NCBI RefSeq assembly: GCF_030028105.1
Contig: NC_092384.1
Location: forward strand, 17,615,629 to 17,679,628
DNA: 64,000 bases
Reading direction: 5' to 3'
Source: Mobula birostris
Lineage: Eukaryota
Positions 4,528 to 62,214 of this stretch are shown here, one piece after another. Every line of letters begins with the position of its first letter. Positions within the stretch are counted from its first letter, which is position 1. The notes beneath the pieces are model-generated. The model searched no databases and was not told where the DNA came from. It worked only from the letters and a program-made list of their open reading frames with translations. The position numbers and the translations under genes were made by a program.

Positions 4528-6465
4528 AATATAAAGACAGAAATGTGGCGTGTTGAAGAAGGTGTGGCTCCAAGGAGGCAAATCATTTCCATATTTTTTA
4601 GGATTGCCCTAAATTAAGTTTATATTGTGAAGGTATTCACAGAACATTAGTTAAGGTATTTAAGACTCAGATAACTCTGAAAATTGAGAATCTCTATGTG
4701 GGGCATGTATTGTTTTTTGGAACACAAGAAAGATATCAAGCTGCTGCAGGCCCTTTTAGCGGCAAGTAAGAAATCAATCGCCAGAAAGTGGTTAAATCCA
4801 ATCTACATTAGAAGATTGGCATGAAATCATTTTGGAAATATTTAACATGGAAAAGATGACCTAATCACAGAGAATTCAAAAGAAAAAAAATCAAATTTGC
4901 AATAAATGGATTGAATTTATAACCCCAGAGCGAGCAGACTTTAGATGACTCTCCTAATGGTTTATACTGTTTGACTCAGCAACATAGTAATAATGTTAAC
5001 GTAAGGACCCTTCACACAAATGTTTACTGATTTTTTTTTTTGGAAAATGTGGAATTAACACAAGTAAAGAAAAGATCTGGGGAAATTTTGGACCAGAAGA
5101 GACACATGGAAATTAGTATTCAACCTCTATTATTAATATTTTATAACAACTATTATCATTATTTAGATTAATAAAGTGGAATTACAATTGCACATAAACA
5201 TCTATTTGATTGCCTAATTATTTTCTATATGATTTCAATGTGCACTTGTGAATGTACATATTAAAATAGATTTACTCATATAAAAAATGGAAAAGGTCAT
5301 ATATGAAAAAAAAGTTTGTGTATTACTTGTGAATACCTTATCCAAATAAAAATAAAAGAAAAAAAAAGAAAAAAAAGGAATGATCGGGTCTGTGCAATAG
5401 ACCGGAAGAGGAGATTCCGACTGAGCATATCAGACATTATCACCTTGAACGGCTGGGCAGTAGACAGGGACGGAATGGCTTATTGCTGTTCTTTTCTTAA
5501 TTTTCTTTCTTTTATTTTATTTTATGACAATTTTCTCTAATGAATCGGAAAAATAACCGTTTATCTTGCCAATTGTTACATGTGATATCCATCTTTGAAG
5601 ATTGCAAGAAACGAAACGCAGCGATGCTCTAGCCTGCACTCATCGATATTCTATAGCTCTGAACCGCAATTGGATTCTCAGCTTCACAGCTTCTTTGATG
5701 TATTTACATCTGCGTAAAATGTATGTTTGCTTTGATCTTTGGATGCCGGTGCGCATTTCGAATCGGGAATCTGCAGAGTGGCGTAAGTCAGTTTGTCAGC
5801 TCCACTTCCAGTAGTCTGTGAAAGTAATGCAAAATCAGTGGTTAGTCGAACACCTAGTGACCAGTTGAATCACACGATTGTAAAATAATTTAGAGATGTA
5901 CTCATAAGTAATGAACTTTAGGTTGCTTACGCTTTATGCACAATTTATGTCAACGTTGTTTCAAGATTTCACTTTATGATTTATATATTAGAGTTTCTTT
6001 CCTTACTTAAAAAGAACTTTAACCAAATCAAGTTAGGAGAGCAAAGAAATTCTTGAAGTAGCAGTAATGGTACAAACTAACTGGCTAACTTATAATAACA
6101 TCGCATTTTCTGTCATTTGAGTCATCCTGTTTCGTCTATAGAGCTCACAAGTATTTACTCAGCTACACCTGCCAACACAGTTCCAAATGCACATGGGCGT
6201 TGTCGGCAGTGGACAGCGCATAACTGATAGAGTGAACGTTGGCACTTTGTTCAGTCAGGCTCTCTGATTACAGTTTTGTAACAATTCGGTATTTCCGGTA
6301 GTTCAGTTCTCTTCGGTTATTATCAGACACTCGTCTTTATTATGGAGCTGATAATGGGCGTTGGGAAGGATGACATTCCCAGTTTCGTGCCTTTTGGCGT
6401 TTCCTCACGTGCAAATTATATGTGAAATTAAAATCGTAAAAGCAAGGAAAAAGTAATCTCTAGAG

Positions 6466-7660
6466 ATTCTGCAGATGCTGGAAATCTTGAAGACTGCAAA
6501 CAACATACTGAAGGAAATCATTAGGTAAGGCAACATGCAAGTATGTAAATAAATTGGCGGTTGTTTCTGGCAAAGACGCTTTATCAGGATTGGAAAAGAG
6601 GGACAGAACCTAAATTATAAAGGTGTGGTGGGGATGCGGGAAAAATAGCAGGTGACAGGTGAAACCAGGTAAATGCTAAGGTATGTGGATGATTGGTGAA
6701 AGAATGACGTAAGAAGCTGGGAGGTGACGAGTGGAAAAGGTAAACCGTATGTAAGGGGTTTCTCCTTTATGTTACTGTTTAGGCTAATCAAAATGGTTCC
6801 TTTGTTATGTTACTGCTGAGAAAGTGCTTCTCTCTCTCTCTCTCTCTCGCAGCTTGTTTGGGTTATAAAGAGAATAGTATTCATTTGCTAACCAATTGGG
6901 ATAGATGCTCTTCTTTCTTGTGTGTACGTAAGCTATTGTTTAGCGGACTTTGGGCGAGACTGCGCGTGGGGATAGAGACAGGAGACGCGATGTTGTAAAT
7001 TGGGCGGCGGGACGGACCCCGAGCGGGAGTCCGAGGCCCAGGGTCTTCGGCGAGGAGAGAAGACGAAGACAGACTCGCGTGGAGCATCTGGTCGCCACCT
7101 TGGTTGGTCCCAGGCGGCGGGTCGAGGAGGTCGGGGAGGATCGAATGGTGGGAAGAAGACTACCTTAGCTGATCTCCTACTGTTGCGCACGAAGCAGTTG
7201 AGCTTTGATAAGTTTGGCGCCTTTTACTTTCATTTTATGTTTTATTTCTATTAATTACATAGTTCCAGTAACATCTATAAAGTGTAATCAGTTAATCACA
7301 TATGGTGTATGGTCTGTTATTTGGCGGGGTGGGGTACATCACACAGCATCCACACAAACTTGATTACCCAGCTTGGCGGGGCCGAAGGCTGCTCTCCCTA
7401 GACGAAAGCGAGCTGAGCGAGCCTGAGGCTTGCCAGCAGGCTACACGTGTCTGAAGGAATCGGGTACGGGAGGATTGTGGTCCCTGCAAAGCAAAAGAAG
7501 GAGGAGCCCGAGGGTGGGGACAGCCTGATGGGTAGATGACGAGAAGATAAAAGGGGAAATGGAGAATGAAAGAAAAAGAACGGAACGATAGGGAAATTCC
7601 CAAAGGTTAGAGAAATCGACGTTTATGCCTTCAGGTTTGAGTCTCCCGAGATGGAAGAAA
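6466..7660. repeat. Non-autonomous interspersed repeat (CTGCAGATGCTGGAAATC family) interrupted by an LTR-like element
   Basis: The CTGCAGATGCTGGA-type terminus recurs degenerately near 24290 and, reversed, near 32560-32590; purine-rich body. Confidence 0.5.
6750..7522 (+). mobile_element. LTR-like element (probable solo LTR)
   Basis: Begins TGTAAGGGG and ends GGGGACA; contains a (CT)n tract and a GC-rich core; TSD not evident. Confidence 0.45.
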
Positions 7661-7749
7661 ATATTATGCTTTTACCAGAATATTAAATTGTATGAGGCGA
7701 TAGGTTAGTTTTCACTGAAAGGGGATTAGCTACGACGCGTTTTATATTT

Positions 7750-8140
7750 TGTTACCACAAGACCACCCACTCCCCCACCTTCTCACCATAACCTTTGATG
7801 CCCTGTCTACTCAGATACCTATCAATCTCTGCCTTAAATACACCCAATGACTTGACCTCCACTGCTGCCCGTGGCAACAAATTCCATAGATTCACCACCC
7901 TCCGACTAAAATAATTTCTTCGCATTTCTGTTCTGAATGGGCGCCCTTCAATCCTTAAGTCATGCCCTCTCGTACTAGACTCCCCCATCATGGGAAACAA
8001 CTTTGCCACATCCACTCTGTCCATGCCTTTCAACATTCAAAATGTTTCTATGAGGTCTCCCCTCATTCTTCTAAACTCCAAGAGCAGACAAACGTTCCTC
8101 GTATGTTAACCCTCTCATTCCCGGAATCATTCTAGTGAAT
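7750..8140 (-). mobile_element. CR1 3' fragment
   Basis: ORF 7752-8036 LFPMMGESSTRGHDLRI...FSRRVVNLWN. Confidence 0.85.
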
Positions 8141-8224
8141 CTTCTCTGTATTTTGTTACAGTGTCAATGGTATGCTTAAGTTTGTAAAATTAACTTCCTC
8201 TTGGATGATGATTTTATATATAAA

Positions 8225-8360
8225 CCCTTTGGGGTACTCCAGTTTCCTCCCAGGTTCCAAAGACTTACAGGTTAGGAGGTCAATTGGTCACGTAAGTGTT
8301 ACTGAGCAGCATGGACTAATTGTACCGCAGAGCCTGCAACCATGCTATATCTCTGATGCA
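8225..8360 (+). mobile_element. SINE central/3' fragment (V-SINE-like)
   Basis: GGGTACTCCAGTTTCCTCCCA...TCCAAAGAC...GGTTAG core; reversed relative at about 36090-36140. Confidence 0.55.
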
Positions 8361-10097
8361 AGTCTATATCATAATCATGCTAATCTCCCTGCTTTACCTG
8401 GGAATAGATAACGCGCTCCTTCGGTTGTCGATCTTTGCGAAATCGTTTGCTGGCGCTGTGGTTTAGTGAAGCATAGGCAGTGGTGTGCTCAACCGGTGCT
8501 TGTTCAGCCTGTTAGAAAAACATATTTAATACAGCTAACTGAGGCGGAACTTAGTGATCATAAACTAAATTAGAATTCTAAAACATAACACCAAGGATAA
8601 AAAAATTGTTTGAAAAACATTTTGTCTGCGCACAATGATACTGTCCATACATTATGCCGAAGGTGGGATCTCGACCGTTTCAGGCTGGAAATCGCTATGT
8701 TTAGATTTTCAGATCACCGCTTATAACAGTCCTAGGGATAGGATGGTGTTCTCAGTTCTGGCCATCTCTGTTTTTTTTTCATCTCCTAAATCCTATCTCT
8801 TACGTCGCTCTAAATTCTGTGCATGGGCACAGGCCTATCTTGGCACAGGATCTATCTTTTACGCATGCGTCGCATTATTGTACTCATTGTCCTGATCAGA
8901 ATTCGTCTGAAACTCTGACCCTTACAGTTCATATTATTTAAATTAAGGATATTGGAGCAAATGGCAAGTCCTGATGCTAAGTGTCGCTTAACTCAAGCCC
9001 GTCACACGGGAGCGGCATCCTGGGCTTTCGTTGATATGATAGGTTTTCCTGGTGAATCACTTAAATTGCGATCGAAGTAGATAGAGCCAATGGACGTGGT
9101 TGTTGCAGTAAATGATAAAAATGGCAATTGTTTTGCTGAAATAATGGCATACATTCCAGAATAATAAAGTAATAGTAAAAATTTAATCATGAATGCTTCA
9201 GCTTCAACTTAAATATTACTGTAAGAAGTAGCCCTAAATTTTCGGAAGTTTTACAAACACTGCTAGAAATTTTAGCGGTATTCTACCATTATGAAATCAG
9301 TGATGTGTGCATGACTACCTTATCTTTGCTGCTACAGTCGCTTCATTTGCATCTAAAGTCGTTACGTAAAATTAAAACGAAATTTGTTGAACTGGGTAAG
9401 TGATTAATGAAATACTAGAAGACAAATGTTATCAGGAGAATGAATCCAGGCGGAAAAAAAAACATTGAGGTGCGGGAAACATGAAGTAAAACAGAGAAAT
9501 AGAATACAGAAAATTTTAGTAGATCAGGAACCACCAGTTAAACAGAAATAGTTAACGTTCACTTTGCATTCTGCGGTCGTCATTCTAGACTGTCAACTGG
9601 TTCTGTTTCCAAAATCGGTCAGTAGCTACAGATTATTTTCTGGTTTGAATCCAAATGGGAGAGGACAATACTTTTTATCCGTTTTAGGCTTTGCTTCCCA
9701 AATTGAGAATGATAATCATTCAGCGTAGCATCGTGGACTAGAAGGTGTCATGTGGGGTTTCGTTTAACAATGTGGTTATCATTGTTCACCACATACTACA
9801 AGGTCTTGTTGCAAGTATATTCGATTCCATTGCAGGTTACGCACTGCTGTGCGTATCTTTTTGCAGATCAGGGTTAAAACTGCACTTAATATTGCAAGAA
9901 CCATTTCAGTAAAACAAGATTCCGTTACATTTTTACCTTGATGCTGTCCGTCAGTCAAATATAACATACATTACGACTTGATTCGTGCACGTATGGTACT
10001 TTCCCATTGCCCAGTCAACTGCGATTCTCGTAATCTAGCATTAAGTAGTTTCTCACACTCTCAGATATGTGTTGAATTACTCGTCAAAACAACTCAC

Positions 10098-10215
10098 CTT
10101 CCGATGGTAAATATTACCGTTCACCTGACAATCCAACCGGTTATGAACCGGTGTGGAATCTTGAAAGGTTCCAAGAAGCATATGCAAGAATATTCAAATA
10201 AATCTTGGATATATA
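10098..10215 (-). CDS. Candidate cytoplasmic exon 2: YISKIYLNILAYASWNLSRFHTGS* (stop 10141-10143), or 27-nt mini-exon VNGNIYHRK (10098-10124)
   Basis: Acceptors TTTTCAAG| (10215) or TTGTCAG| (10124); consensus donor AAG|GTGAGT at 10097. Confidence 0.4.
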
Positions 10216-10353
10216 CTTGAAAATAAATTCTTGACGTGGAAAATTGTTTTATTTTCCCTACCACGCTCCAAAGTGTTATGCAATAAAATACATTCATAAT
10301 ATCTTTGCTATGCAAATATCCCGCTCTGAAACAAGACGAGTCGCTTCACCTAC

Positions 10354-10397
10354 CGGGTCTTCATTCTGACATCCCTCCAAAGAATTTGTGTTACCCC
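10354..10397 (-). CDS. IgSF receptor cytoplasmic exon 1 (GGNTNSLEGCQNEDP)
   Basis: Long pyrimidine tract TTTTTGTTCTCTTTTCTGAAG|; donor CCG|GTAGGT; phase 1-0 in frame. Confidence 0.75.
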
Positions 10398-11031
10398 CTT
10401 CAGAAAAGAGAACAAAAATAAATGATTTGCATTGTAAACATTGAACATTTTTCATTTGATACCAATATAATTAATCTTGTAAGTGGAACTGCTGAAGGTA
10501 CGGATCTTGCAGAAAATATTTGTTGGTAACAGTCGTACTGTGTTCTGCATTAAGCTGGTGCTAAGCTCAAAAGGCATTGACTTTCCACGAGGATGTAAAA
10601 TGATCATAGCATAACAGCGGCGGTGCTGTACTTAAGTATGGCAAACAAAATGGAAATTAAAACCAATGGGACGGGCATAAGTTGGTCAATGTTCTTTGCA
10701 CAATCAGAGGGAGTTTAGATATACGCCAAGACGTTTACGTTTCAAAATACGGATCTACCATTGTATGGAAAAGACATTTGAAGAACTCCAAAGGGATATA
10801 ACGGCATTCGTAAATGAGATATGAAATAATTCCAGTGGAATCGTGAAATAGTTAAATTTTAAGATCAAGCATGTATTGTGACAGAATATTATCACTGAAA
10901 TTCGGCTTCGAAAATCGTGATCCATGTCCAATCATTCTGTAAATGTCATTTACTGTTTTAAAGTTAAATATCATCAAAGCTTCTATTTTATACGAATAGA
11001 GGTGATGTATAGAAGCGATCAGTTTCCTTAC

Positions 11032-11130
11032 CGTGTGATCTCTTTAACTTCAGTCTCAGCAAAAGTATTATCAGAATTAAAATTGCCGATCCGCCCGCTG
11101 CACGTTCGAGAATCAATCTGGTATCAGCGC
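11032..11130 (-). CDS. IgSF receptor exon: transmembrane segment GADTRLILERAAGGSAILILIILLLRLKLKRSH
   Basis: 99 nt, phase 1-1 (CTTTTTCAAG| and G|GTAAGG); hydrophobic stretch followed by basic stop-transfer RLKLKR. Confidence 0.85.
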
Positions 11131-12222
11131 CTTGAAAAAGAAACCGTGAACCATTGATACAACTAAACACAAATACACACATGACAATCAATAGTGCAAA
11201 CTATTCTTTAGGCTCCTTTCATATCTCACCACACACAATGATTGGAAAATGCACAGAATATACAATATAGAACAAAGATATCCGAATTTAGTTTCTCCAG
11301 ACACATACGAGCTATTTTCTGAGACTAAGAATAGGCTCGGCTGCATCTTCCTATACTTCTCTTGACAATAGATATCAGCAAAACTATAGAACGTGTAAAC
11401 ATCAAACCAAATACGATTCTGATCTCGATTCAACCGGTAAAATCATGTCTGTCAAGAAGATTCTTTCGTACGATCAAAACCTAAAGGTAACTCGTTGACT
11501 CGCCACAGGAGTCCCGGTGCAGCAACAATTCGCTTCCGCATTACATGCTGAAATTACTCGTTAACTTCATGAGATTATAACACTGTACTCTCTAAGCCTC
11601 CTGAATGTGTATCGAGCATATTAAACGTATATTCCCACTGTTATGGTTTCCACAGGTTTAGGAGTGACAAACCCGAATTCATGGAAAACTGCGTAATGAA
11701 AACATAGACCAAACTAAGTCACCCATTTGAATTCTGTTGCCTACTATTATTAGAAGGTAATTACGCGGAGATTAGATTTTGACAAAGTCTGTCCACAGTT
11801 TCGCCCCCTATGCATTCGTTTCAGGTGGCAATTAAGTGTCACGCCTCGGTGTTCAGGAATTCCTATCTTGATTCAGATTTTGCCCCATCTCCACATTTTT
11901 TTCCGGTAAAACTATGTCAATTAAGTACACCTTCGCTTATCAGCAGATGGTTTCCCCCGTTGTTATATCACCATGAGATTCAGAGTTTGTTTTGCTTTGT
12001 CTCATTTTTGACTAATCTCCAGAATTTTGTTACCTTACAAGTACTACACGAATTTAATTTCTTAATTCATCCTACACGATTTAAGCTGAGGGTATAAGAA
12101 ATTTGTTTTAACACCATTCACATTGAATGTTCGCTGCAAACAAGTAATCTTAAAATTCCGCCCTTCGTCTGTGTTTGGGTAGCTATTCCGCCCCTGTTCT
12201 TAACCAGGTTTGATCTACCCAC

Positions 12223-12268
12223 CTATATTGTTTGGAAACGTTTCCAACTTCCCGGAACGCTGGAGATT
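12223..12268 (-). CDS. Candidate stalk exon (E)SPAFREVGNVSKQY(R)
   Basis: TTTTAACACGTTCAG| and AG|GTGGGT; phase 1-2, in frame only with the alternative TM acceptor at 11117. Confidence 0.4.
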
Positions 12269-12396
12269 CTGAACGTGTTAAAAACTCAGAGTAGCACACA
12301 AAATACTGAAGGTACGCAGCAGATCAGGAGAGGAATAAAGTAACGACGTTTAGATCCGAGACCTGATGTCAGGACGCAATCAAGACACCATCTTAC

Positions 12397-12690
12397 CTTG
12401 CTCCAGGATGTGGCTGAAACAAGCAGGCACCGTGAGGGAGACATGCAACACCAGACAGATGTAAACATCTTTTCTCCAAGCAGACTGATTAATTTCCAAT
12501 AAACTGTAAGCCTCATATAAACCCTTCGCCGTCTGGTTAATATCCGTTTTTATTCCAGTGTGAATTTGCTTGTTATTTTTTTGCCAGACGATTTGTAATT
12601 CCTTCGGGTAGAAGGCAGCTGTTTTACAAAGGAGTTTCCGAGGAGACGAAAACTCTGCAATAGGAACGATTTCCAATGGAGTTGGGGGAG
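12397..12690 (-). CDS. IgSF receptor exon: C1-set domain
   Basis: 294 nt, phase 1-1 (TTCAAG|CT and G|GTAAGA); LLCKTAAFYP, IVW, YICLVLH (C1 hallmarks FYP and YxCxVxH). Confidence 0.92.
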
Positions 12691-14139
12691 CTTGAATTAA
12701 AAAAGTTATTTTGGGTGTTACAATCCACTTAGTTCAAATAAATTCCTTTATCTTCCCGCCAATTTCTATGACATCTCGGTATCAAATTAGTTACCCGCCA
12801 TAGGTTCCCAGTATTTTATAAATTATTTTAAGTTCAGGTTCAATTTCATAGTTAATAAACCACACAGATGTACATGGCTAAATGAAACATATTTCTTTAT
12901 ACTTCATACTATATACTTCCTTTTCTTCTGGGGTCAACGGCAAAATGCAGTCCATGTATTCACACACAGCACGTGCAGTCACCACCCAGTACATACAGTG
13001 CAAAAAAAAAACAAAGTAAAATCGAGTCACCGTGCAGAGACAGATGAAAGGAAGAATTTGAAGAAGGCACAGAGCAGGCGAATCTAAGGGGTGAGAAATG
13101 AGAAATACATTCTGTTTTGAATGGTCTTTCAGCTTTATCACATGATTCTCTTTGCGGCAGCGCGTTGGCTTTGGAAAATATTCCTTTCTGCATTTTTTCA
13201 TTTCCAATCAAAACTGAACGATAAAACCCAAAATATGACAGATGTCCACACTCCGAACGCAAGAAGCTCTTGAACATTGGTTTAATATTCTGGCAACTCA
13301 TTTGCTCAGGTTGTTTTTCAGAGCTTACGTTGGAGCTTTCCAATGATCAACATTCACTGATAGAGCTTTCCTCGGAATGTATATCATTGCTAGAAAATTT
13401 CTCCCGCATCTAATGTGTTGAATGTGGCAAATCCTACCCTCCATGAAACAACTAGGAACGGGAAAGCGGAGATGATATTAAACGCATCTATTCTACATTT
13501 CTATTCTTTCATAAACCTGTCGGCCTGCAGCAAAATGGTCGAAAATGACCTGGTACTGCTATACGATCGATGAAGCCCTGCAGAAAGGCAACCCAGGAGC
13601 TGAACGATCTCCGCTTCTCTCTGCAGAGATTTCACTGAAAGGTAAGCCCAAAATTCACGATCGTGTAAATGTGGACTGCTTCCGCTACAACTATGGTTCG
13701 TATTTAACTTAGGAAAGTCTACTTTCAGATTTCTTTATAAATATTTCACAACATTTAGCATTTCGCTCTGCCTACAATGGCCATCCTGAGATCACGGTTG
13801 CCGTACAGCACTGCCATGGGCCATATACAGATGACAGATGTTTATGTGCTTGTTGCCGTGAGGCAAATTAGTTTGTATAAATCCTCATGGCCCGAGATGG
13901 AGTCCCATCCGAAGTCTTGCGAGGCTCTTGCATAATTTGAAGGTGCCTTGATAGAGGTATTCAAAATATCCTGACCCACGGGTGAGGAGCCGGAACTGGA
14001 CATGACTAATTTTTGCAGATGTTCAAGAAACGCTCTAAGAATACGCTGCAATCTTTCAGGCTGGTGAGCCTGACGCTTGTAAAGGGTAACTTGTTGGAAA
14101 TATTCCAAGTGACAGGATACATAACTATTTAGATAGGTG

Positions 14140-14600
14140 CGGGAATAGCCATCAAGATCATGTGCATGGTAAGCAGTGTCTGGCTTATCTTAACGAGCTT
14201 TTTGAGGAGTTTACCACAGATCATGTTGAAGGAAATACAGTAGATGTTGTCTACATGGCAAAACCTTGTGCACAGTCCGGAATGAGAGGCTGATCAAGAT
14301 GGTTCGGTTGGCATTCAGGATGAAGTAGTAAATTGGTTTTCACATTGGCTTAGTGGGAAAGCCAGGGAGTGGTAGTGGACGGCTTCTCTCTGACTGGAGG
14401 CCTGTAACCAGAGGTGTGCCACGGGAATCGGTGCTGGTTACGTTGTCAGTTGTCATCGATATTAATGATTTGTATGATAATGGATTAAACTGGTTCAGGA
14501 AATTTGCAGATCTGGACAGTAGAGAATACATGCAATGTGATATGGGACAGCTGTTAAAATGGACTGTAAAATTACAGCTGGAATTTATTCGCTTCCGAAT
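14140..14600 (+). mobile_element. Degenerate CR1 RT fragment in the V-C1 intron
   Basis: WRPVTRGVP...VLVTLSVVIDINDL...FRKFAD. Confidence 0.75.
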
Positions 14601-15024
14601 TCCATTTGTGCGCAATTCTCTACCCTTTACATTTAAGCCTATCAAAATTCATCTCGATTTTACGATTTCTATGTCTCTCCCTATTTTGAAAGGGGAAAGA
14701 GGTATAGATTTTGAAAACTTTTGCAAAACACATTTGGATTGATAATTTGCAGCGCTTGCGACAAATAGGTAAATTATATTGCTATTAATACTTCTGGATC
14801 TGGGTGAGTTTGTAACCTTGACATATCCTGTAAGAGAGTTGATAAAATTGTTCATGACTTGCATCCTGTGTAATGGGAAATCGAGCTTTCCAACTACAGC
14901 CACTCACATTAGTAACAATATTATTTCGACATCTTGCCTGCAAAGCAAATGGACTTGAAAATTAATTCCTTGTTTTTGAAGCACCATCCCGATAATAATG
15001 CTAAAGTCGAAGGGTATCACTAAC

Positions 15025-15189
15025 CTTGGACATTAGCTTTAAATAGGAGATTGCCGATCGATAGGTCTGCACTAACAGCAGTTGTAAGGAGTACGATACA
15101 ACAAACAGAATCAACGTTATTTCTCGTCCAATTGACGCTGCCTGAAATGTGATAATTTTCTTCTGTTCTTTTCAACTCTACAATTGGAG
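15025..15189 (-). CDS. Candidate cassette exon (55 codons) after V: APIVELKRTEE...VCCIVLLTTAVSADLSIGNLLFKANVQ
   Basis: Open, phase 1-1 (CTACAAG|CT and CAAG|GTTAGT); 145-bp intron from V; function uncertain. Confidence 0.4.
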
Positions 15190-15334
15190 CTTGTAGAATG
15201 GGGTTTACTTTAACGCGTGAAACAAATCCATTCTCGCCTTTTGTTTTATCAAAGAGTAACATTACATATTAATCTCATCATTAGCTTTAATTTAACTTGC
15301 ACAAAAGAGAAAATCTCCTCGCAGCCGCACTCAC

Positions 15335-15640
15335 CGAACACAGTGAGCTTGGAGCCACTTCCATTCCAGAAAGATTGTTCCCGATACTTTGTTCCACAGT
15401 AGTACATTCCGGAATCGGCGAATTTCACATCCAGAAGAAGAAGCTTTCCTCTTGTTTTGTCGAGACTAAATCGTTTTCTGCCATCACTTTCTAAAAATGC
15501 ATTCTCGCCTTCCCTCCACCAAAGAAAGTTAACAATATCTTTTGATATTGGAGTACTGCAGTGCAAGGTAACATTCGTTCCGCCCGGAACGTCCAAGTTC
15601 TTAGGGAATTGATATACTCTGAACGCAAGCACTGGGACTG
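15335..15640 (-). CDS. IgSF receptor exon 2: V-set domain with germline-fused J-like G strand
   Basis: 306 nt, phase 1-1 (TTTTCCGGCAG| and G|GTGAGT); VTLHC, LWW, DSGMYYC, then WNGSGSKLTVF (GxG J motif). Confidence 0.93.
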
Positions 15641-15848
15641 CTGCCGGAAAATAAACAAGAGCATTAATAACAGCTACACAAAGGGAATAAATAAGAACCT
15701 AAAGACGGGCTGTATGTTACTGGATAACGAAGAGACAAAGACGACCGAATTGCTCAACCGCTGAAACTAGGTATGCAGCGGGAACCCAGGTTTAAATTTT
15801 CTAAAATGGAATACTCAGTTCAGAAACGGAACATTTAACTTAGCATAC

Positions 15849-15876
15849 ATAGACAGGTAATAGCCAGAAGCGCCAT
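15849..15876 (-). CDS. IgSF receptor exon 1: signal peptide MALLAITCL(S)
   Basis: ATG at 15876; phase-1 donor T|GTATGC; joins the V exon in frame to give the hydrophobic leader MALLAITCLSVPVLA. Confidence 0.75.
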
Positions 15877-16479
15877 GTACGAAACCGTAAATTTCTCTGA
15901 CATATTACAGAAACCTAACCGAGCAATTTTGGGATACAAGTGATATTCTGAAGAGTTTGTGGAAGGAATAAAAATTCAAGAGTAAATATATGAACCGTGT
16001 AATCATGACGTAGGATGACGCCTCACCAAGACAGAAGCAGGTGTTTCAAAGATCGTTATACTGGGCAGACAGGGCAGTGAGAGCTCTTCCCTTTTCAATT
16101 GTTAAAGGGCCATCCAGTGCTTTCAAAATTATGTTCGGATTTTGTGCACTATGCTGAATTCAGGAATTATCCATTTCTTTATTTCGAACTAAATTCAAAT
16201 CTGTGCTCTGCCAAGTGATCCCAAATATGGAAATCCGCCGTGGAGTCATAAATATCTAATAAAATCTGCGGTTTTGAACTGGATGGGTAAGATGGCACGA
16301 GCGACCAATGCGACTAACGGTGAATTCTTGCAAACGTCCACGATTTTTTTCTTCTTCTTCTCCTTCTTTTAAAAAGCATTTTATATATAATTAATGTGTG
16401 CGCGATTGGAGCCTGCAATAAACAAATTGATAATGTGCCTTTGGACCAATTGAGGGATCTGGCGCTTTTGGTCTCTCCG

Positions 16480-18412: not shown

Positions 18413-20520
18413 ACTCATTTTCAACAGTTGTGCAATTCGAAATTTTCAACAGTTATGCGGAGCTTGTATCTTCCTGTCAGGATTAAAGGCAAAGAGGATA
18501 GGAATAAGGATCCTTGGTTCTCAACCGATATTGCAACTCTGATACAGAAGAAGAGGGAGTTGCATGACATGTATAGGAAACAGGGAGTAAATAAGGTGCT
18601 TGAGAAGTATAAAAAGTGCAAGAAAATACTTAAGAAGGAAATCAGGAGGGCTAAAAGAAGACATGAGGTGGCCTTGGCAGTCAACGTGAAGGATAATCGA
18701 AAGAGCTTTTACAGGTATATTAAGAGTAAAAATTTGTAACGGGTAAAATTGGTCCTCTTGAAGATCAGAGTGGTCGGCTATGTGCGGAACCAAAAGAAGT
18801 GGGGGAGATCTTAAATAGGTTTTTTGCGTCTGTATTGACGAAGGAAACTGGCATGAAGTCTATGGAATTGAGGGAATCAAGTAGTGAGATCCTGGAAACT
18901 GTACAGATTGAAAAGGAGGAGGTGCTTGTTGTCTTGAGGAAAATTAAAGTGGATAAATCCCCGGGACCTGACAGGGTGTTCCCTCGGACCTTGAAGGAGA
19001 CTAGTGTTGAAATTGCGGGGGCCCTGGCAGAAATATTTAAAATGTCGCTGTCTACCGGTGAGGTGCCGGAGGATTGGAGAGTGGCTCATGTTGTTCCGTT
19101 GCTTTAAAAAGGATCGAAAAGTAATCCGGGAAATTATAGGCCGGTAAATTTGACGTCAGTAATTAGTAAATTATTGAAGGGAATACTGAGAGACAGAATC
19201 TACAAGCATTTGGATAGACAAGGACTCATTACGGAGAGTCAACATGGCTTTGTGCGTGGTAGGTCATGTTTGACCAATCTATTGGAGTTTTTCGAGGAGG
19301 TTACCAGGAAAGGGGATGAAGGGAAGGCAGTGGATGTTGTCTATATGGACTTCAGTAAGCCTTCGACAAGGTCCCGCATGGGAGGTTAGTTAGGAAAATT
19401 CAGTCGCTAGGTATACATGGAGAGGTGGTAAATTGGATTAGACATTGGCTCAATGGAAAAAACCAAAGAGCGGTAGTAGAGAATTGCTTCTCTGAGTGGA
19501 GGCCTGTGACTAGTGGTGTGCTACAGGGATCAGTGCTGGGTCCATTGTTATTTGTCATCTATATCAATGATCTGGATGATAATGTGGTAAATTGTATCAG
19601 CAAATTTGCTGATGTTACAAAGATTGGAGGTGTTGTGGACAATGAGGATGGTTTTCAAAGCTTGCAGATGGATTTGGACCAGCTGGAAAAAAATGGGCTG
19701 AAAAATGGCAGATGCGTTTAATACAGACAAGTGTGAGGTATTGCACTTTGGAACGACAAACCAAGGAAGAACATACAGGGTTAATGGTAAGGCACTGAGG
19801 AGTGCAGTAGAACAGAGGAATCTGGGAATACAGATGCAAAATTCCCTGAAAGTGGCGTCACAGGTAGATAGGGTCGTAAAGAGAGGTTTTGGTACATTGG
19901 CCTTTATTAATCAGAGAGCTGTAATGTTATGATGAGGTTGTATAAGGCATTGGTGAGGCCGAATCTAGAGTATTGTGTTCATTTTTGGTCACCAAATTAC
20001 AGGAAGGATATTAATAAGTTTGAAAGGGTGCAGAGAAGGTTTACAAGGATGTTGCAGGGACTTGGGAAACTCAGTTACAGAGAAAGGTTGAATAGGTTAA
20101 CACTGTATTTCCTGGAGCGTAGAAGAATGAGGGGAGATTTGATAGAGGTATATAAAATTATGACGGATATAGATAGAGTGAATGTAAACAGACTTTTTCC
20201 ACTGAAGCAAGCGGAGAAAAAAAAACGGAGGACATGGGTTAAGGGTGGGGGGGTGGAGTTTAAGGGAAACATGGGGGGGTGCTTCTTCACACAGAGAGTG
20301 GTGGGAGTGTGGAATGAGCTGCCAGACGAGGTGGTAAATGCGAGTTCTTTTTTAACATTCAAGAATAAATTCGACAGGTACATGGATGGGAGGTACATGG
20401 AGGGACATCGTCCGTGTGCAGGTCAGGGGACTAGGCAGAATATGGTGCGGCACAGCCAAGAAGGGCCAAAAGGCCTGTTTCTGTGCTGTAGCTTTTCTAT
20501 GGTTTCTATGGTTCTATGGA
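18413..20520 (+). mobile_element. 5'-truncated CR1 (ORF2 RT region, frameshifted)
   Basis: KSPGPD, HGFVRGRSCLTNL, QGSVLGPLLF, KFAD; (TTCTATGG)n tail; possible 7-bp TSD ATCGCCA (18406-18412, 20521-20527); close relative of 47715-51958. Confidence 0.93.
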
Positions 20521-23500
20521 ATCGCCACGAATCAGCGGGGACATTGCGCTGTTTTTATTGACACGGTATCGCCGTCACTGAACTGTATCTCCTGCCCTCT
20601 CCGAAATGAAATCGTGTAGGTGCTTCGAGCATGAAGTTGTTCGCAGTTAACACATATTTTATCCTTGGATCCCAGTGGATGTAATTAAGGTCGGGTTGTT
20701 GATAAGTTCGTCCAGGACAGGATGAATCAATGCCGAGCTTCCATTTGCTTCCTACGAACAGAGTCAACATTCTCATTACCGTGCCTATCGCCACACCATT
20801 TTACCCAGTTATGCATCGGAAATTTCCATGAATCGTTTGGGATGTTATGCCACTTTCACAGACACATGGTCGCCATCATTTAATTCAATCTCATGTCCTC
20901 TCAGAAATGAAATCGATCACAAAAACACACATCCAGCTGGATGTAATTGAGGTAGGGAAGTTGAGGAGGCTGGCTGGAAGAGGACACGACATTGTTAATA
21001 TTGTTAATCTTATCCTGCTGCAGATCTGGATGAATTGTAAGAGAAAAAAAAACTAATGACAGACAGTTTAATTTTACCTTTCAAGTGATTTGAGATGTCT
21101 AATACAGATATGAGACTGCGGCAGAAAACTCCGCTTCCAGCGGATAAGTTTTCTGCCGAGACCGGGAGTGGTAGGGGAGGAGGGGTGGGTTGCGGGCCTG
21201 GTCTTGATCATCAGAGATCAAAGGTGACAGTACCGTGATTAATTCCTCATGAACCACTGCCTGTTCTCTATTAGTCGATTCTACATGGCCTGTAGGAATG
21301 CAACAGTAACTTGGATCGAGCACTAAGCACTTAACAATAAGCTGGCTGAAAAAATTATCTCGTTTGAGCACATGTGAGATGGTTGTGGTTGCTCTTAGGC
21401 GACAATTAAGTAAGACTGCACATGCATCATTAATTTCAATTGGTTTGGATGCAGTCCCTGTATCTCTATGGTTTCATCAGCATAGATCTGCTCAGTGTTA
21501 ACTGGCGTTAAAAAGCACAGGATAGTATAAGAAAATGGGTGCTTTTTAAGTACTTAGTTTATCGGTTTATGAATTCCCATCCTTGAATATGTCTGATAAT
21601 ATCAAAAAAATCAAGATGTTTACCTGTGAAGCCCCGCTCTGGTTTGGTCTGCGAATCTCGATTTGTGATTCGTGAGACGCTTTAGTCCGCTGCCCGAGAT
21701 AATCCATTGAAAGGTCGCGCCTTTAAATGCCTCTACCTTTATTGGAAACATATTCCCAAGCGTTTTCAAAAATGTCATTCTTTAAGAGAACAGCACAGCT
21801 GCGCCAAACCTGTTATAAGCAAATCAAACCACGCAAACACTAATCACACCGACCTAACCCATGTTAATCCTTGCATCCATATGCTTCTCCAAATGTCTAT
21901 TAAAAGCCTCTTTTGTACTTGCCGCTACCACCATACCAGTCAGGTCATGCCAGGCATCCTCAACTCTCAAAGTAAAAGACCTGCCACTCACAGTCCCCCG
22001 AACCTATCCCCTACCACCGTCAATATATGCCCTCTGGTGTAAGACATTTCAACTCTGGGTAACAGATACTCTCTGTACACTCTATCTATACCTCTCATAA
22101 TCTTGTGAATCTCTATCTGATCTCCCCTCAGCCCCCGACGCGCCGAAGAAAACAACCCAAGTTTGTCAGCCTCTCATGATAGCACAAATATTTCAACTGA
22201 ATTTACATTATTATTTTGGTAAAATATTAGGGAGATGTGTTGCAGTTACTCCGACTGCAAATATAAGCTATTGTTTGATACCATTGGGCAAATGTGATGG
22301 GAATATCCCAGCACTCTTGGCTCCATCGGCTCAGTGAGAAATCGCGTGAACACTTGAAGTTCATAGTTTTTCACTCGGCCATAAACAGCAATGTTTTGTG
22401 TTTTCCCCTCTCCAGAGAAGGTTCCTGACTTGTCTAGAATTCCCAAACTTTTCTGTTTAATTCGGTTTGCAAACATCGGTAGCGCTCATTTCCGTTAATT
22501 ACACTTCTTTCCGTTAAAGACCTAACTAGATATAAGCTGAACATGTGAAGGCATGACCTTCTTTCCCCTTTCGTTTGTCTTTAAATGTATCGTGGAAATA
22601 TTTTAGTTAAAAGACAACTCTCGACATTGTCTCATCATGTCATTTTTCTACCTGCTCTTTACCCCATTAGCACTGCGTTTAATATCAGATGAACGAGTAC
22701 AGCACAGGATTTGGACCTTCGGCAAAGCTGTCTGTCGCGACACAATGTCAAATCAAAATAAATGTTTACTAGCTGCGTATGATCTTTATCTCACATGTCA
22801 CTGCACATTCGTGTGCCCATTCAAAAGCCTCTTTCGTACAGTATCTTCTTCTGATTTCACCTTCTCTAAGGATCAATTCCCTCGAGTAAGGTATGTCTAA
22901 TTCCCAGTGCTCCTGCAGTTTATGCGAATTGAAGTCTTCGTAACAATTTGTCACGTGTTTTTGCGAGTCCGTATGAAAGAAAAACCATTCCGGTTAAGTG
23001 AATGCGCAGGACATTCAACTAATTCTCAAATGCATTTTCCAACTCGTCTTAGTCTGGAACACGTTAAAGTCATCAAATAAGAAACAGATATTATTTCATG
23101 TAATCTACGAATTCTGATGTGATTTACACCACCACCACTTTGGAAGATTGAGTCTAATACACTTAAGAGTTATACCAAAATCCCCAGGGCTACATTATCC
23201 GGGTGAGCGGAAATCATCGTCCATTTTTTACCCGTATTTCCTCAATTAAGTAATCAGAATATGTGTTCCCACACCCACCCCCACCCCCGAGATCATATTT
23301 ACATTGCCTTTTAATTTGTAAAGTAAGTTGATCACTATTCAATATTCTCGGAGAATGACTCACACATAAATATCAGCTATTCAGTTGTTCTTAAAACATT
23401 ATTTAGTGTAGTTATCTCCAGAATGAACATGTCGGAGAATCAGGAAGTATAGACGCCGCAGCACAGCTTCAGAAACATTTAACTGACAGAAGCAGGCTTC

Positions 23501-26218: not shown

Positions 26219-27650
26219 ATGGGACAAAGATTAGATAAGTCTGTAAATAACACGCCATTGTTTAAACTTTGTAAGGATGACCCAGAGAGAGAGAATGATT
26301 ACCGAAGGTTATCAGCATGACTAAATAAGAAATTGGGGAGTGACATTTGGCCTCAGGGTGGGACCTGGGATTTGGATAAATGTCTAGAGGTAGAAGAAGC
26401 AAATAGGAAGCGTAATACAGAACAAAAATGGAAGGTTTTAATGTCCAATTGGAGAAAAGCGGCCGAAGAATTAAATAACAGATCTAAGCAAAGAAGCTGG
26501 GAGCATAACGCATCGTCGCAGAGGGATTAGTGTATGTGACAATGAAGGAAATTAGAAACCGTGGGAAATATTTAATGGACTGTGTGAGGATCACGATAAG
26601 AATAAGGAAAAACAGGATAGGGGATAAAGAGATAGGTGGGCTAAGGATAGACGGAAGGATGATGATGAAGCCGGCAAAAGTAAAACTGAGGTACCTCTTG
26701 ACCGGTCTGGACTGCCCATGCCCTTTAATGAAAATGTCACTAAGGAGAAGGAGGTATTGCACATTCCCGTTGCCTGCATTCCAACCCATGGCGCCACCAC
26801 CCTCATATAACGTTACTGCTGCCCAACCCCAGGCTCCTCCGAATACACCGTCCCCAAGCCCAATAGCCTCCCGAGCCAGTGGATAACTTCGGCGACGGGG
26901 GAGTAATAGGCGCCAGGCTAGGAGGCGACGAAACCTTTTGGTGGGAGATGGCCCCTGACAGGCCTTGAGACGGATACTGATTATGACCCTAGTATTGAAA
27001 ATGATGATTCCGAAGACTTGAGACCCAGAGGGAGAGGGATCCCTGGGCAATTTCCCACAGAACCGTTCCCAACCCTAGGGTAGGACAGCCGAACCAGGCG
27101 GATACTATTCAGGTTTAAAGACCTTGGAAGCCCCAAGAAATGTGTATGATCATGAATCAGGTCCCGAACAGGGAAAATGATCCCGAGGGATCTATCGATT
27201 GGTACAACCCAAATGTTTCAGGTGACTCCCCATGATCTTTTCAGCTTGTGCTGTATGGCTGTTACGACCAGTGAACAGAAGAAATGAAAATAAGCTATAG
27301 GGGATCATGACAATTAGGAGGCCTTTTCCACCGCAACCCTGCCCGCAGAACGGATGTGCAAAATAACGAAGGCACTAAAGAAGGCTTTGCAGCACCCCAT
27401 AGACATCGTTATGGTCCTTGAGTGCCGCCAAAGGCGGGAGAAGACGGTTGCGATTTTTGGGAACGCTTCTGCTCCCTTTATGCAACCTACTCTGGAGATG
27501 CCGCCTATAATGCCGGCAATACTTCGCCCCAGTTTAATTCGATGATATTACAGTGCCTCCCCGAGGATGTCTCCAAGGCTATTAGAATTATATGGACTGG
27601 CCCGATAGGAATAAGCAGGCCATGAAAAGGGCAGTTGAGCATTTTTTGAG
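26219..27650 (+). pseudogene. gag: ERV gag (MA, late domain, CA), disrupted and truncated
   Basis: MGQ start, WPQGGTWDL matrix motif, PPSY late domain (26797-26808), RPWKPQE capsid start; stops and frameshifts. Confidence 0.8.
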
Positions 27651-27689: not shown

Positions 27690-30221
27690 ATTGTGCAGCC
27701 TATACATCCGGTGGTCCCTACGATTTTAAGCAACATTCCACCGGACTCCCAAGTTTTCATTATAGTCGATCTGCAGCATGCGTTTTTTTGCAATACCCCT
27801 TGCTCCTGAGTCACAGTACCTTTTTTCATCTACCTTTCAAGACCAGCAGTACACTTGGACTAGGTTACGCCAAGAGTTCGTGCACTCGTCCACCATTTTC
27901 TCGCAGATATTACATAGGCAGCTTAGAGATTTACAATTTCCCGGAGGCTCTACGGTAATACAGTACGTAGATGACCTCCTACTGGCACGCCCATCAGAAA
28001 CCTCAAACGTGCAGGACACCAATACGCTTCTGAACGCTCTGCTTTCATGGGGATATGTGATTCCCCCCCGAAAAGTAAAGAAAGCCCAACGGCAAGTGAG
28101 ATTGCTGGGAACCCTTTTGAGTGCAACCGAAAGGCAGCTCATCCCAGAAAGGGTAACCAGAATCCTTGCGACCCCCTGCCATCTACGCCGAAAGCCATGC
28201 GTGCTTTCCTTGCGCTGGTAAACTTTTGCAGACAGTGGATTCCCAATTTGGTTATGTATACAAAACATTTGAGCCCTCTGGTTTCCAGTTCGCTTGCGGG
28301 GCCCCTAAAGCTAACTGAGCAACAGAGAGAGGCTTTTGAGGAATTGAAGAAATCCCTCTCGAGTGCACCTGCTCTCGGCCGCCCGCTCTATGACCGTCCG
28401 TTCCAACTTTTTGTGAATGTTTCAGATGATTGGACCACTGCAGTGCTCACTCAGATTCATGGGGATAGACGGAAGCCTATTGCCTATTATTCCATTAAGT
28501 TAGACCCCGTAGCGCAGGGATTACCCCCTGTTCGCAGATGCTCCCGGCCGTTTACTTCCTAGTTACGGCTGTTTCCAACATCACTCTCCAACAGCCAGTT
28601 ACAGTGTATTCGTCCCACACCATGGCAGCGCTGCTGACCACCCACCAAACCCAACATCTGACTCAGACCAGACTAAGCCGTTATGAAATAGCATTACTTA
28701 ATAACCCACTCCTCACCTTTGCATACAGTGATACCATCAACCCGTGCTACATTTTTAGAGATGGCACCTGTTGAGTTGACTGAGCCTCCTCATGACTGCC
28801 TGCTTAGGAACCATTTCCTCACCTCCTCCGGAACCCCCATCCAGAATGCCATGTGTGTAAGGAGCCTCCTTCAGGCCATACTCCTCCCCGAAATAAATTA
28901 GCCATTATTAACTGTTCGGCTCATCTAAAAGACGAATCTGCAGTGACTGAAGGAATTAACAGAGCAGATTTGACTGCCAAGCAGGCTGCGCAGGAGGCGA
29001 CTGCTATAGTCTTAAATGCAGAACATTTGGCCTTCACCCTGACTAAAACACCACGAGCGCCGGGCACTCCAGACGGGGCTACAGTTCAAAAACTCCAGGG
29101 GGACGCCCCTGATTCACAAAAACAACTTTGGAAGACACACGGGTGTGCGCATTCGGTGTCCACAGGCCTCTGGCATACCCCAGTTGGCCAGGTTGTATTC
29201 CTAATACATTGCTGCCTATGTTGCCCGATTGCCTGCATACGGACACCCACCTTGGCAAGGGGGGAATGAGTAATATTTTGCTCCGCACATGGTGGCACCC
29301 TAGGCTGAAGGAAGCTGCTGCAGCAAAATTACAAGCCTGTTTGATTTGCCAAAAGAAAAACGCAGAAAAGGGAGTAACGTGCGCCCCAGGGAAAACCTCC
29401 TTGCCAAGTGACCCTTTTGAATGTATTCAGCTTGATTTTATCGAACTACCACGCGTGTACAGTTATAAGCATTACTTAGTGATTGTATATGTGTTCAATA
29501 AATGGATTGAAGCCTTTCCGACCACCAATAATAAAGCTTCTACGGTGGTGAGGTTGGTGCTTACAGTGATTATACCGAGATTCAGATTGCCCAGGCAAAT
29601 AAGTTTGGATAATGGCCCTCACTTTGTAGGAAATATAAATAAAGAACTATGTAAGGTGCTGAGCATCGAACAGCAGTTTCATTGTGCTTACCACCCGAAA
29701 GCTGCAGGAATAGTGGAACGGGCCAACGGCACCCTGATAAACAAGCTGTCTAAGTTAATGTCCGAAACCGGACTGAGTTGGCTGAAGGCCCTTCCGCTGG
29801 CTTTATACCATATGAGAATTACCCCGCACTCCACTACAGGGGTGTCTGCAGCTAAAGTTTTTATGGGCGCCCGGGAAGGACCTCATGGGACGCTGACATG
29901 CAGCCTCCCACCCAAATTGATCAAAATGTCATGGGGGACGAATTGCAGAAGTACTTTAGCGAACTAACATCCTCGTTAAAGTTTCTTCACTCCCAAGTAC
30001 AGAATGCCCTTAAGGAGCCTGGAGGTCAGGGAACGGAGTGGCCAGAGTTGAAAATTGGAGATTCGATACTGATTAGGGATTGGGAGCGCTCCAATCTTAG
30101 ACCCCGGTGGATAGGGCCATTCCAGATACTACTGCAAACCCCAACGGTCGTTAAGGTTCGAGGGAACAGCCGCTGGATCCACCTAAGTGATTGCAAACGA
30201 TGGGCTCCGCAGGTGGACTAA
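27690..30221 (+). pseudogene. pol: ERV pol remnant (RT C-terminal part, connection, partial RNase H, integrase)
   Basis: VDLQHAFFAIPL, QYVDDLLLA, PIAYYS, HHCC (HTDTH...CLIC), DFI/DNG/VER catalytic core, GPF motif. Confidence 0.9.
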
Positions 30222-31513
30222 AGACTATTACTGGACTTTTCACTATCATAACTGCCTCCGCGGTATTAAGCCTGGAGTACAATTTATTTTATAAGACTCA
30301 TATACGTCTGGATGGTAACCGTACTGCGTGTTATCCTTTGGTAAAATCTGTAGAAGCATTGTTTGTTGCTAACCCATCAGGGCTAAATTGGGTGGAACAT
30401 GACTAAATAGTGGAGAATAGATGGGGGCAGAATGTAAGGGGATAAGAGGAAAGCTTAAAAGGGGGGCTATGGGAAAGTGCCTGAAGAGAGTGGGTGGTGA
30501 GACTACTGGCGAGGGCATTGGGGATTATCCCTTCTGTTTTGCAGGGGAGGGAAAGGGATGCGTCCTTGTCAGGGTTCTCCTGGAGATACCTTGCCTGAAG
30601 AAACATTGTCCAGACCTCAGATGTAGGATAGACCAGGGAATATTCTCTTGCAAATGTATCCACGAGCAATGCGTGCCCCTCTTTAAGGGAATTCAGTATG
30701 TATGTGGATATTGCAATGGGACTCATGTGTCGGCAGGTTCAGAGACTTTTGAATATTCTTCCCTGTATCCACAGGAGCACTTGTGGTATGACAAAATAGT
30801 GATTTACAAAAATACCTGTGACGGAGCCAAGACAGGATATGTGTTATTGTTCAACGGTACCTATACTACAGCTACCACCACTATGCCTAACCTTCTCGCA
30901 GTAGGAACGATTGGACCACTTCCTGTTCCCTGCCCTCATGTTGCCCACGTTCAACGGCGACTGACAGCTTGAGCCGTGAGTAGGAATTCTGTACTGACTG
31001 GAGGAATCCTGTTGCTCTTCTCTGGGCTATGGGTTTGCGAGCACTCTCTCTCTAGGGGGTTCGGCAGGTAAAGAACCACAACTTGCTCATTTGTGGGCTG
31101 GCGCATTGGGAAACAGTACGATGGAAGGTCTGGAGGCTGTTAACAGAGAACTGGTGGCGTTGCAACTCTACGCACAGCAGACCAGGTGCACTATGGATTA
31201 TCCGTTGGCCCAACAGGGAGACAAATGTATCACCATGTTACTGACGAATCATACGACGTGACCCATGCCATTCAGTCCATTAAGAAACAATTGGATGATT
31301 TCAGGCAAGGTTCGGCGAAGGGGGATGGCTGGTTAGGATGGTTGCAAGGAGGATCATGGAGGTCTTATTTACTGCATGGGCTGATTATTCTCATTGTTAT
31401 AATTATTGCTTGCTGTGTGGTAATAACCTGCCTAAATGCTGGCTGCTGACTTCTCACGGAAAGACTGATGGCACTCTGCTCTACCCCCATTTGATTGGTT
31501 ATCATGGTATGAT
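30191..31513 (+). pseudogene. env: ERV env remnant
   Basis: Signal-like LFTIITASAVLS; Cys-rich SU with CGYC; VQRR cleavage-like site; heptad ELVALQLYAQQTR; membrane anchor YLLHGLIILIVIIIACCVV; stops. Confidence 0.8.
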
Positions 31514-45019: not shown

Positions 45020-45190
45020 TCTTCCTGAAGCCTTGTCTGAAGCCTTTGCCTGAAGCCTCTGCCTGTAGCCTCTGCTTGCAACCTCTGCCTGAGGACTTGC
45101 CTGAAAACTGTGCCTGAGGCCTTGCCTGCAACCTCTGCCTGAGCTGTTAACTGCATACTCTGCCTGAAACCTTGCCTGCAACCTCGCCTG
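45020..45190. repeat. Imperfect about 12-bp minisatellite (GCCTGAAGCCTT-like)
   Basis: About 14 degenerate TGCCTG(A/C) units. Confidence 0.7.
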
Positions 45191-50618: not shown

Positions 50619-50720
50619 AACCTTTCTATCAGCGGATTTGCTTGAACTCTTTACATCAAATCATTTTCACCCCAGCCACACTGTCAGCTCTGCCACTCTG
50701 GTTCCCATCCCCCTGCAAAT

Positions 50721-62063: not shown

Positions 62064-62214
62064 NNNNNNNNNNNNNNNNNNNNNNNNNNNNNNNNNNNNN
62101 NNNNNNNNNNNNNNNNNNNNNNNNNNNNNNNNNNNNNNNNNNNNNNNNNNNNNNNNNNNNNNNNNNNNNNNNNNNNNNNNNNNNNNNNNNNNNNNNNNNN
62201 NNNNNNNNNNNNNN
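62064..62214. other. Assembly gap (151 N)
   Basis: Run of N. Confidence 1.

Follow-up and report, generated by a model that had tools for sequence, protein, structure and literature searches.

The 64,000-nucleotide stretch of Mobula birostris DNA analyzed here (NCBI RefSeq assembly GCF_030028105.1, contig NC_092384.1, positions 17,615,629 to 17,679,628 of the forward strand; hereafter the window, whose own numbering is used throughout) carries on its minus strand a gene for a membrane receptor with one V-type and one C1-type immunoglobulin (Ig) domain. An earlier note on this DNA had described five minus-strand exons with GT-AG boundaries that spliced in frame. The minus strand of positions 9900-16100 was read and the five exons were spliced by script, upon which their coordinates and boundaries held and the peptide of the note was obtained exactly. 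AG preceded each internal exon, GT followed each exon, and the cumulative phases over exons 1-5 were 1, 1, 1, 1 and 0. As to the extent of the gene, the note was right about these five exons but not about the start and the end, having missed an upstream ATG at 15903 and two further exons at 8398-8508 and 5684-5815. As revised, the locus occupies positions 5684-15903 and comprises seven coding exons, which join into a clean open reading frame (ORF) of 1041 nt encoding 346 amino acids. Intron phases were 1, 1, 1, 1, 0 and 0, with phase-1 introns flanking the exons for Ig domains and phase-0 introns flanking those for the cytoplasmic tail.

All exons lie on the minus strand. Exon 1 (15849-15903) contains the start codon (15901-15903) and most of a split leader, and ends in phase 1. 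A second in-frame ATG is found in this exon at 15874-15876; the upstream one (MSEKFTVSY-MALL...) is the start in all batoid relatives, and together with the MSEKFTVSYMALL leader it is common to the database proteins P0002, P0020, P0151 and P0153. The leader intron (15641-15848) is a phase-1 GT-AG intron of 208 bp, and the last six residues of the leader are encoded in the V exon, an arrangement of VJ exon and split leader also seen in UrIg and UrIg2. Exon 2 (15335-15640) encodes the end of the leader and a V domain whose J-like strand (W-N-G-S-G-S-K-L-T-V-F) is germline-joined. Exon 3 (12397-12690) encodes a C1-set domain and a membrane-proximal stalk with an unpaired cysteine (VPACFS, residue 211), and exon 4 (11032-11130) the transmembrane segment LILERAAGGSAILILIILLL; Glu-Arg is situated close to the outer end of this segment, and a basic stop-transfer stretch comes after the segment. 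Exon 5 (10354-10397) is the first cytoplasmic exon; its peptide, GNTNSLEGCQNEDP, is conserved among paralogues in the alignment, and its donor, CCG|GTAGGT, leaves phase 0.

Exons 6 and 7 were located by tblastn of the window with the tails of P0020 and similar paralogues, which extend about 80 residues beyond the exon-5 peptide; the matches had E=3e-15 for exon 6 and E=1e-17 to 4e-20 for exon 7. Exon 6 (8398-8508; ag|GCT...CAG|gt, phase 0 to 0) adds 37 tail codons, including TAYASL, which resembles an immunoreceptor tyrosine-based switch motif (ITSM), and VIYSQ. Exon 7 (5684-5815; acceptor ag|ACT) adds the last 43 codons, with the immunoreceptor tyrosine-based inhibitory motif (ITIM) LTYATL and the ITSM-like TFYADV, and ends at a TGA stop codon (5684-5686). 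A candidate polyadenylation signal for this long form, AATAAA, lies at 5516-5521 on the same strand, 163 nt past the stop. Under the seven-exon model, positions 10098-10353 are intron. The spliced product was 89% identical (E=8e-173) to the gene model P0002 of Mobula hypostoma, a match that excludes a chance origin of the exon pattern, and its length equals that of paralogue P0020 (346 amino acids). No exact counterpart of the protein of the window was found among the database proteins searched. The locus is a real, intact gene for a type I membrane protein.

Pfam searches assigned exon 2 to the V-set (E=7e-10) and exon 3 to the C1-set (E=2.4e-12). The V domain is a compact one, its cysteines being 54 residues apart, and a C'' strand is absent from the AlphaFold2 model of the ectodomain of the orthologue, which was calculated from a 60-sequence family alignment (predicted local distance difference test score 91.5, predicted template modelling score 0.81) and has its two Ig domains laid out in extended form. 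The V domain and the J-like strand are contiguous within exon 2, no heptamer-spacer-nonamer recombination signal sequence (RSS) was found in a scan, and the introns between leader, V, C1 and transmembrane exons are in phase 1, all of which had been proposed in the earlier note. An exact heptamer, CACTGTG, does occur at 15345-15351 (minus strand); it consists of the codons L-T-V of the J-like strand, has no nonamer at 12 or 23 bp, and was dismissed as coincidental. Alignment of the family with a lambda chain placed an Asn where the FGXG motif of Ig and T-cell receptor (TCR) chains has its interface F/W, and this Asn is part of an N-G-(S/T) glycosylation sequon conserved in the family; both features would argue against V-V pairing of the Ig/TCR kind. 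The ectodomain contains four N-glycosylation sequons, of which the N-G-S in the J-like motif is one.

C1-set domains are recognized by 13 residues from the B-strand Cys to the C-strand Trp, (F/Y)(F/Y/H)P in the BC loop and xVxH after the F-strand Cys (Hatherley et al. 2009, PMC2785349). In exon 3, C-KTAAFYPKELQIV-W gives the 13 residues, FYP is present, and C-L-V-L-H is found after the F-strand Cys. The cysteines of the ectodomain form two domain disulfide pairs, plus the extra Cys211 of the stalk, through which the protein could dimerize as a disulfide-linked dimer. Searching the window by tblastn with the peptide of each exon revealed no second V or C1 domain and no relic C1 in the 64 kb, in agreement with the single copy noted before.

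The transmembrane segment had a hydropathy of 2.2 over 19 residues. At its outer end, this gene has Glu-Arg where paralogues have Ala-Cys; in the alignment, the Glu is common to P0002 and the Arg is an addition of this copy. The ITIM, the two ITSM-like motifs and VIYSQ are all contributed by exons 6-7. Compared with the Hypanus paralogue P0158, identity was 79% in the tail and similar in the transmembrane segment, 71% in the C1 domain and 50% in the V domain. Few parts of the protein are thus as well conserved as the tail, which argues for selection on the signalling exons. The architecture had been likened to that of a TCR chain in the earlier note; because of the ITIM/ITSM tail exons, this comparison has to be given up in favour of a SIRP-like, inhibitory design. 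A switch from inhibitory to activating function with a near-miss ITIM was also considered, a reading weakened by the genuine ITIM exons downstream.

A phmmer search with the V exon against 1.84 billion representatives gave two kinds of matches, namely giant multi-Ig proteins, whose scores were summed over domains, and single-stretch, full-length V matches in proteins of 224-460 amino acids. Word-indexed searches retrieved 30 proteins with P0002 as the query and 47 with a 15-member alignment. These were all chondrichthyan, from rays (Mobula, Hypanus, Hemitrygon, Pristis, Amblyraja, Leucoraja), sharks (Heterodontus, Scyliorhinus, Heptranchias, Mustelus, Chiloscyllium, Pristiophorus) and a chimaera (Callorhinchus), as were the ten unnamed representatives that were looked up (10/10). 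In these searches the family amounted to about 80 representative proteins of sharks, rays and chimaeras only, and neither the family-alignment nor the tail-only search produced links to bony-vertebrate proteins. Paralogues of one species share one chromosome-scale contig. Names given automatically to the members are inconsistent and include SIRP-alpha-like, SIRP-beta-1-like, NCR3LG1-like, Ig lambda-1 light chain-like, M1-specific TCR beta chain-like, PD-L1-like, CD276 homolog, tapasin-related-like and MHC class II DP alpha-like. No published description of the family was found in the literature. The earlier note had anticipated an innate-type membrane receptor of V-C1 architecture that does not rearrange and that belongs to a poorly characterized chondrichthyan family; this is supported by relatives that all come from sharks, rays and chimaeras.

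According to a census by script, most members have a V-C1 architecture and a few (P0178, P0183) are V-C1-C1. From chimaera to rays, tails with ITIMs of the LTYAAL type and with TxYAxL motifs are met again and again; others of the family are short-tailed with a charged transmembrane residue: R in P0035, P0055 and P0174/5, K in P0156, and D in P0152 and P0168. As far as motifs can tell, this mix is the signature of paired inhibitory and activating receptors. Among close paralogues of stingrays and mantas, opposite charges were observed at the same transmembrane position, with Asp in P0152 and P0168 (AYTVDG) and Lys in P0156 (SYTLKG); the last ITIM exon has been lost in the three proteins. Pairing between chains or the use of different adaptors is a possibility raised by these charges.

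The gene under study has the family hallmarks WW(R/K)xGE, DSG.YYC, N-G-(S/T)-G-S-x-L-x-V, PPTPL, FYP and xVxH, as seen in the alignments, and matches full-length paralogues in its exon plan and in its ITIM/ITSM tail exons. It is 65-67% identical to P0020 and P0158, and its V and C1 domains scored 133 and 138 bits, respectively, against the family profiles. In an IQ-TREE phylogeny of 61 ectodomains, the gene was sister to the pair formed by P0002 (M. hypostoma) and P0151 (M. birostris), with 100/97 support, and the next branches were Hypanus P0152 and Hemitrygon P0155, within a myliobatiform clade. Members of this orthogroup share FRVYQFP, FWNG(S/T)G and the stalk cysteine, and are 85% identical in the V domain and 95% in C1, a difference that points to more rapid evolution of V. 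Family members have already been predicted by public pipelines, and the gene is another copy of an existing family, not a new kind of molecule; its own value lies in the corrected seven-exon model and in the stalk cysteine and transmembrane charges specific to the orthogroup.

Combined, these results make it likely that the locus encodes an intact type I receptor of 346 amino acids, composed of a split leader, a compact VJ domain, a C1 domain, a stalk that contains a free cysteine, a transmembrane segment and a tail with one ITIM and two ITSM-like motifs, and that this receptor belongs to a chondrichthyan multigene family of SIRP-type paired receptors. Several observations weigh against this interpretation. 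In sequence, true SIRPs come no nearer to the receptor than Ig light chains or UrIg2 do, Glu-Arg is an unusual pair to find at the outer end of an inhibitory receptor's transmembrane segment, and a search with the tail alone returned members of the family and no relatives outside it. In addition, the NCBI models of P0002, the closest relative, and of the M. birostris paralogue P0153 pass the exon-5 donor and end without the ITIM exons, and in the window, too, the read-through stop is followed by AATAAA, so that the main product could be tail-less.

The last point was considered further. Read-through of the exon-5 donor into positions 10248-10353 (minus strand) would add 19 codons up to a stop at 10294-10296, the codon position at which P0002 and P0153 also stop, and would yield a product of 285 amino acids, as in both models; AATAAA follows at 10248-10253, about 40 nt beyond the stop. 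A tail-less isoform may therefore be made through a conserved intronic polyadenylation site, and the read-through may be either a real isoform of this kind or an artefact of prediction. Carried further, the 285-amino acid form would be the functional product, with the exon-5 donor skipped and no ITIM, and its transmembrane Glu/Arg would make it an activating or decoy partner of inhibitory paralogues. This would fit a family that clearly includes short-tailed members with charged transmembrane residues, and the Glu shared with P0002. By contrast, exons 6 and 7, for which decay would be expected if they were unused, are intact, in phase, provided with good splice sites and as similar to the stingray tail as stated above; the donor is serviceable; gene predictors are prone to run on into an intron when downstream exons are missed; and Glu-Arg is placed at the membrane edge, not in the middle of the helix where adaptor-pairing residues usually sit. 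That the short form is the functional product is accordingly held to be quite unlikely, and current models of the closest relatives may simply stop short of the ITIM exons, a point of relevance for annotation.

The analysis demonstrates gene structure, domain types, motifs, and the membership and distribution of the family; surface expression, recruitment of phosphatases and inhibitory function are inferred. For the full-length receptor the following sequence of events is proposed as the most likely, from the motifs and by analogy with paired receptors of the SIRP, KIR, LILR and NITR types. The germline-fixed V domain would bind a putative ligand, and Src-family kinases would phosphorylate the tail tyrosines in their ITIM/ITSM contexts. 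The phosphorylated tyrosines would then recruit SH2 phosphatases of the SHP-1/SHP-2 type, which would dampen activation of the receptor-bearing cell. Short-tailed sister genes with transmembrane Arg, Lys or Asp would signal in the opposite sense via adaptor chains.

The remainder of the window is rich in transposons. A long interspersed nuclear element (LINE) at 48543-51689 (minus strand) retains three consecutive ORFs, for a GDSL-esterase/OSK-like protein, an endonuclease (Exo_endo_phos) and a reverse transcriptase, and is probably a fairly young copy of the CR1/L2 type, interrupted by a few frame changes. Remnants of a long terminal repeat retrotransposon pol gene, with RNase H, integrase zinc-binding and integrase core domains, lie at 28047-30972 (plus strand), and a separate reverse transcriptase fragment at 39305-39859 (plus strand). 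Imperfect minisatellites were found at 45020-45190 (periods 13/25/50/64) and 57546-57730 (periods 25/48/73). ORFs of 183-210 amino acids at 19929-20561, 58192-58785 and 30421-30972 (plus strand) and at 26484-27050 (minus strand) had no Pfam match at E<=0.001 and are probably transposon-derived or due to chance. A run of 151 N at 62064-62214 marks an assembly gap or a masked stretch. There were no Rfam matches in the window, and the tandem-repeat scan of it gave nothing relevant to the gene.

To place the ectodomain among known groups of the Ig superfamily, sequences, profiles and the model were compared with PDB entries. The V exon alone gave its best full-length matches with TCR alpha, CD79b and TCR beta (about 29-31 bits), and the C1 exon alone its best single-domain matches with IgM constant domains (34 bits) and UrIg2 (26 bits), followed by light-chain and IgG constant domains and SIRP-alpha. 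With the family profile, the best single stretch was an Ig lambda chain (73 bits), then UrIg2 (53 bits), and over the whole chain SIRP-alpha reached 105.6 bits and light chains about 89 bits. Whole-chain rankings with V-only and C1-only profiles were dominated by titin, contactin and antibody heavy chains and did not discriminate between families. In Foldseek searches the best E-values were those of light chains and TCR beta, at template modelling scores (TM-scores) of 0.40-0.47, which are low because the model is extended and not bent at the V-C junction. The best TM-scores were obtained with SIRP-beta1 (0.79) and SIRP-alpha (0.76-0.78), then CADM, TAPBPL and PD-L1, at identities of 18-24%. 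Re-ranking with VIA-align listed antibody light chains only (Z about 15), since these fill the top 1000 of Foldseek. As judged from alignments and the predicted model, Ig light chains, TCR, UrIg2, SIRP and B7 thus all appear to lie at about the same distance from the ectodomain (18-25% identity). None of the known families is closely related to it, and this accounts for the chaotic automatic names, which are misleading for annotation. The domains do not lie close to any Ig/TCR, SIRP or UrIg sequence, and none of the relatives found is a characterized gene.

In view of the similar design (V domain with J-like strand, C1, ITIM tail, activating partners), it was asked whether the gene, after loss of one C1 domain, represents a true orthologue, or a direct co-orthologue, of the SIRP genes of tetrapods. 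Many members are automatically named after SIRP-alpha or SIRP-beta-1, the SIRPs give the best TM-scores, and V-C1-C1 members exist, one of which, the skate protein P0183, aligns with SIRP-alpha in one stretch across three domains. However, P0183 scored practically the same with UrIg2 (58.4 bits), SIRP-alpha (57.5 bits) and kappa light chains (about 54 bits), identity to SIRP is only about 21%, and no tail homology was found outside the family. Moreover, both C1 domains of the three-domain members score like the single C1 of the family, which suggests a recent duplication and not the ancient d2/d3 pair. Orthology to SIRP genes is therefore considered unlikely, and the SIRP-type paired-receptor family of cartilaginous fish is retained as the preferred interpretation.

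The predominance of Ig lambda and kappa light chains and TCR beta among Foldseek and profile matches, together with the split leader, VJ exon, C1 exon and phase-1 introns, could also reflect descent from a rearranging Ig light-chain or TCR gene that became germline-joined, instead of from a receptor that never rearranged. Cartilaginous fish do carry germline-joined Ig genes. Against such a descent, identity to light chains is 20-25% only, and the family is old and diverse, ranging from chimaera to rays, with hallmarks of its own, WW(R/K)xGE, N-G-(T/S)-G-S with Asn for F/W, and PPTPL. Furthermore, the modelled V domain lacks C'', the transmembrane segment and ITIM tail have no Ig light-chain or TCR counterpart, and no RSS remnants were found. 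This origin is regarded as extremely improbable. A bolder proposal is that the family, and especially the orthogroup with the stalk cysteine, is a surviving non-rearranging V(J)-C1-transmembrane lineage that left the antigen-receptor stem before or around the RAG invasion, with chains forming disulfide-linked, TCR-like dimers by means of complementary transmembrane charges (Lys in P0156, Asp in P0152/P0168). Very doubtful as it is, this proposal would, if true, mean that the family reflects the architecture of the pre-RAG receptor more closely than UrIg and UrIg2 do.

With few exceptions, C1-set domains are confined to molecules of antigen recognition. Two genes of cartilaginous fish that have a VJ-C1 structure and do not rearrange, UrIg and UrIg2, are now used to reconstruct the origin of Ig and TCR (PMC12227049). 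The gene described here, with its corrected exon model, documents a member of a large, apparently undescribed chondrichthyan family, and domain-wise phylogenies and synteny of that family could reveal whether SIRP-type and antigen receptors share a V-C1 membrane ancestor.

Among known systems, NKp30/NCR3, NITR and PRARP resemble the product of the ray gene in being innate immune receptors with a VJ-type domain fixed in the germline. NITR and PRARP exist as inhibitory and activating variants. The members of this group, which are V only, V-I or V-C2, are not known to have a C1-set domain; the comparison with them is one of architecture. PRARP and NKp30 are both cited in PMC10751288. Ig light chains and TCR chains share with the ray gene the exon plan of leader, V(J) and C1 with phase-1 introns and a cysteine after the C domain, as in chains linked by interchain disulfides, and they give the best E-values by profile and Foldseek. 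They differ in that the ray gene has neither a V/J split nor an RSS, bears an Asn sequon at the J interface position of F/W and ends in an ITIM tail; unlike Ig light chains, its model has no C'' strand and is extended at the V-C junction.

UrIg and UrIg2 are, like the ray gene, elasmobranch genes with a single-exon VJ and a split leader, followed by C1-type domains, and UrIg2 ranked near the top of the PDB matches for both the C1 exon and the family profile. The split leader is a hallmark of antigen-receptor genes (PMC12227049), and a short intron within it is typical of Ig/TCR V genes as well as of UrIg and UrIg2. However, UrIg, which is secreted, contains three C domains and UrIg2 nine to eleven (PMC12227049; PDB 9dmx), whereas the ray gene has one C1 and an ITIM tail; both are single conserved loci, in contrast to the large multigene family of the ray gene; and the roughly 26 bits per C domain of UrIg2 are no higher than the values for IgM or light-chain C domains.

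The closest known family in architecture and signalling design is SIRP. Shared traits are a V domain with a J-like GxG strand, C1-set domain(s), a type I transmembrane topology, several tail tyrosines in ITIM/ITSM contexts, short-tailed sister genes with charged transmembrane segments, as in paired receptors, and an extended V-C1 geometry, predicted for the ray protein, with TM-scores of 0.76-0.79. SIRPs differ in having two C1 domains instead of one, and the V domain of the ray protein is compact and without C'', at an identity of about 21%. SIRPs belong to bony vertebrates, whereas the family of the ray gene was found in cartilaginous fish only, where an ectodomain of the VJ-C1 type is combined with modules for inhibitory or activating signalling, much in the manner of SIRPs.

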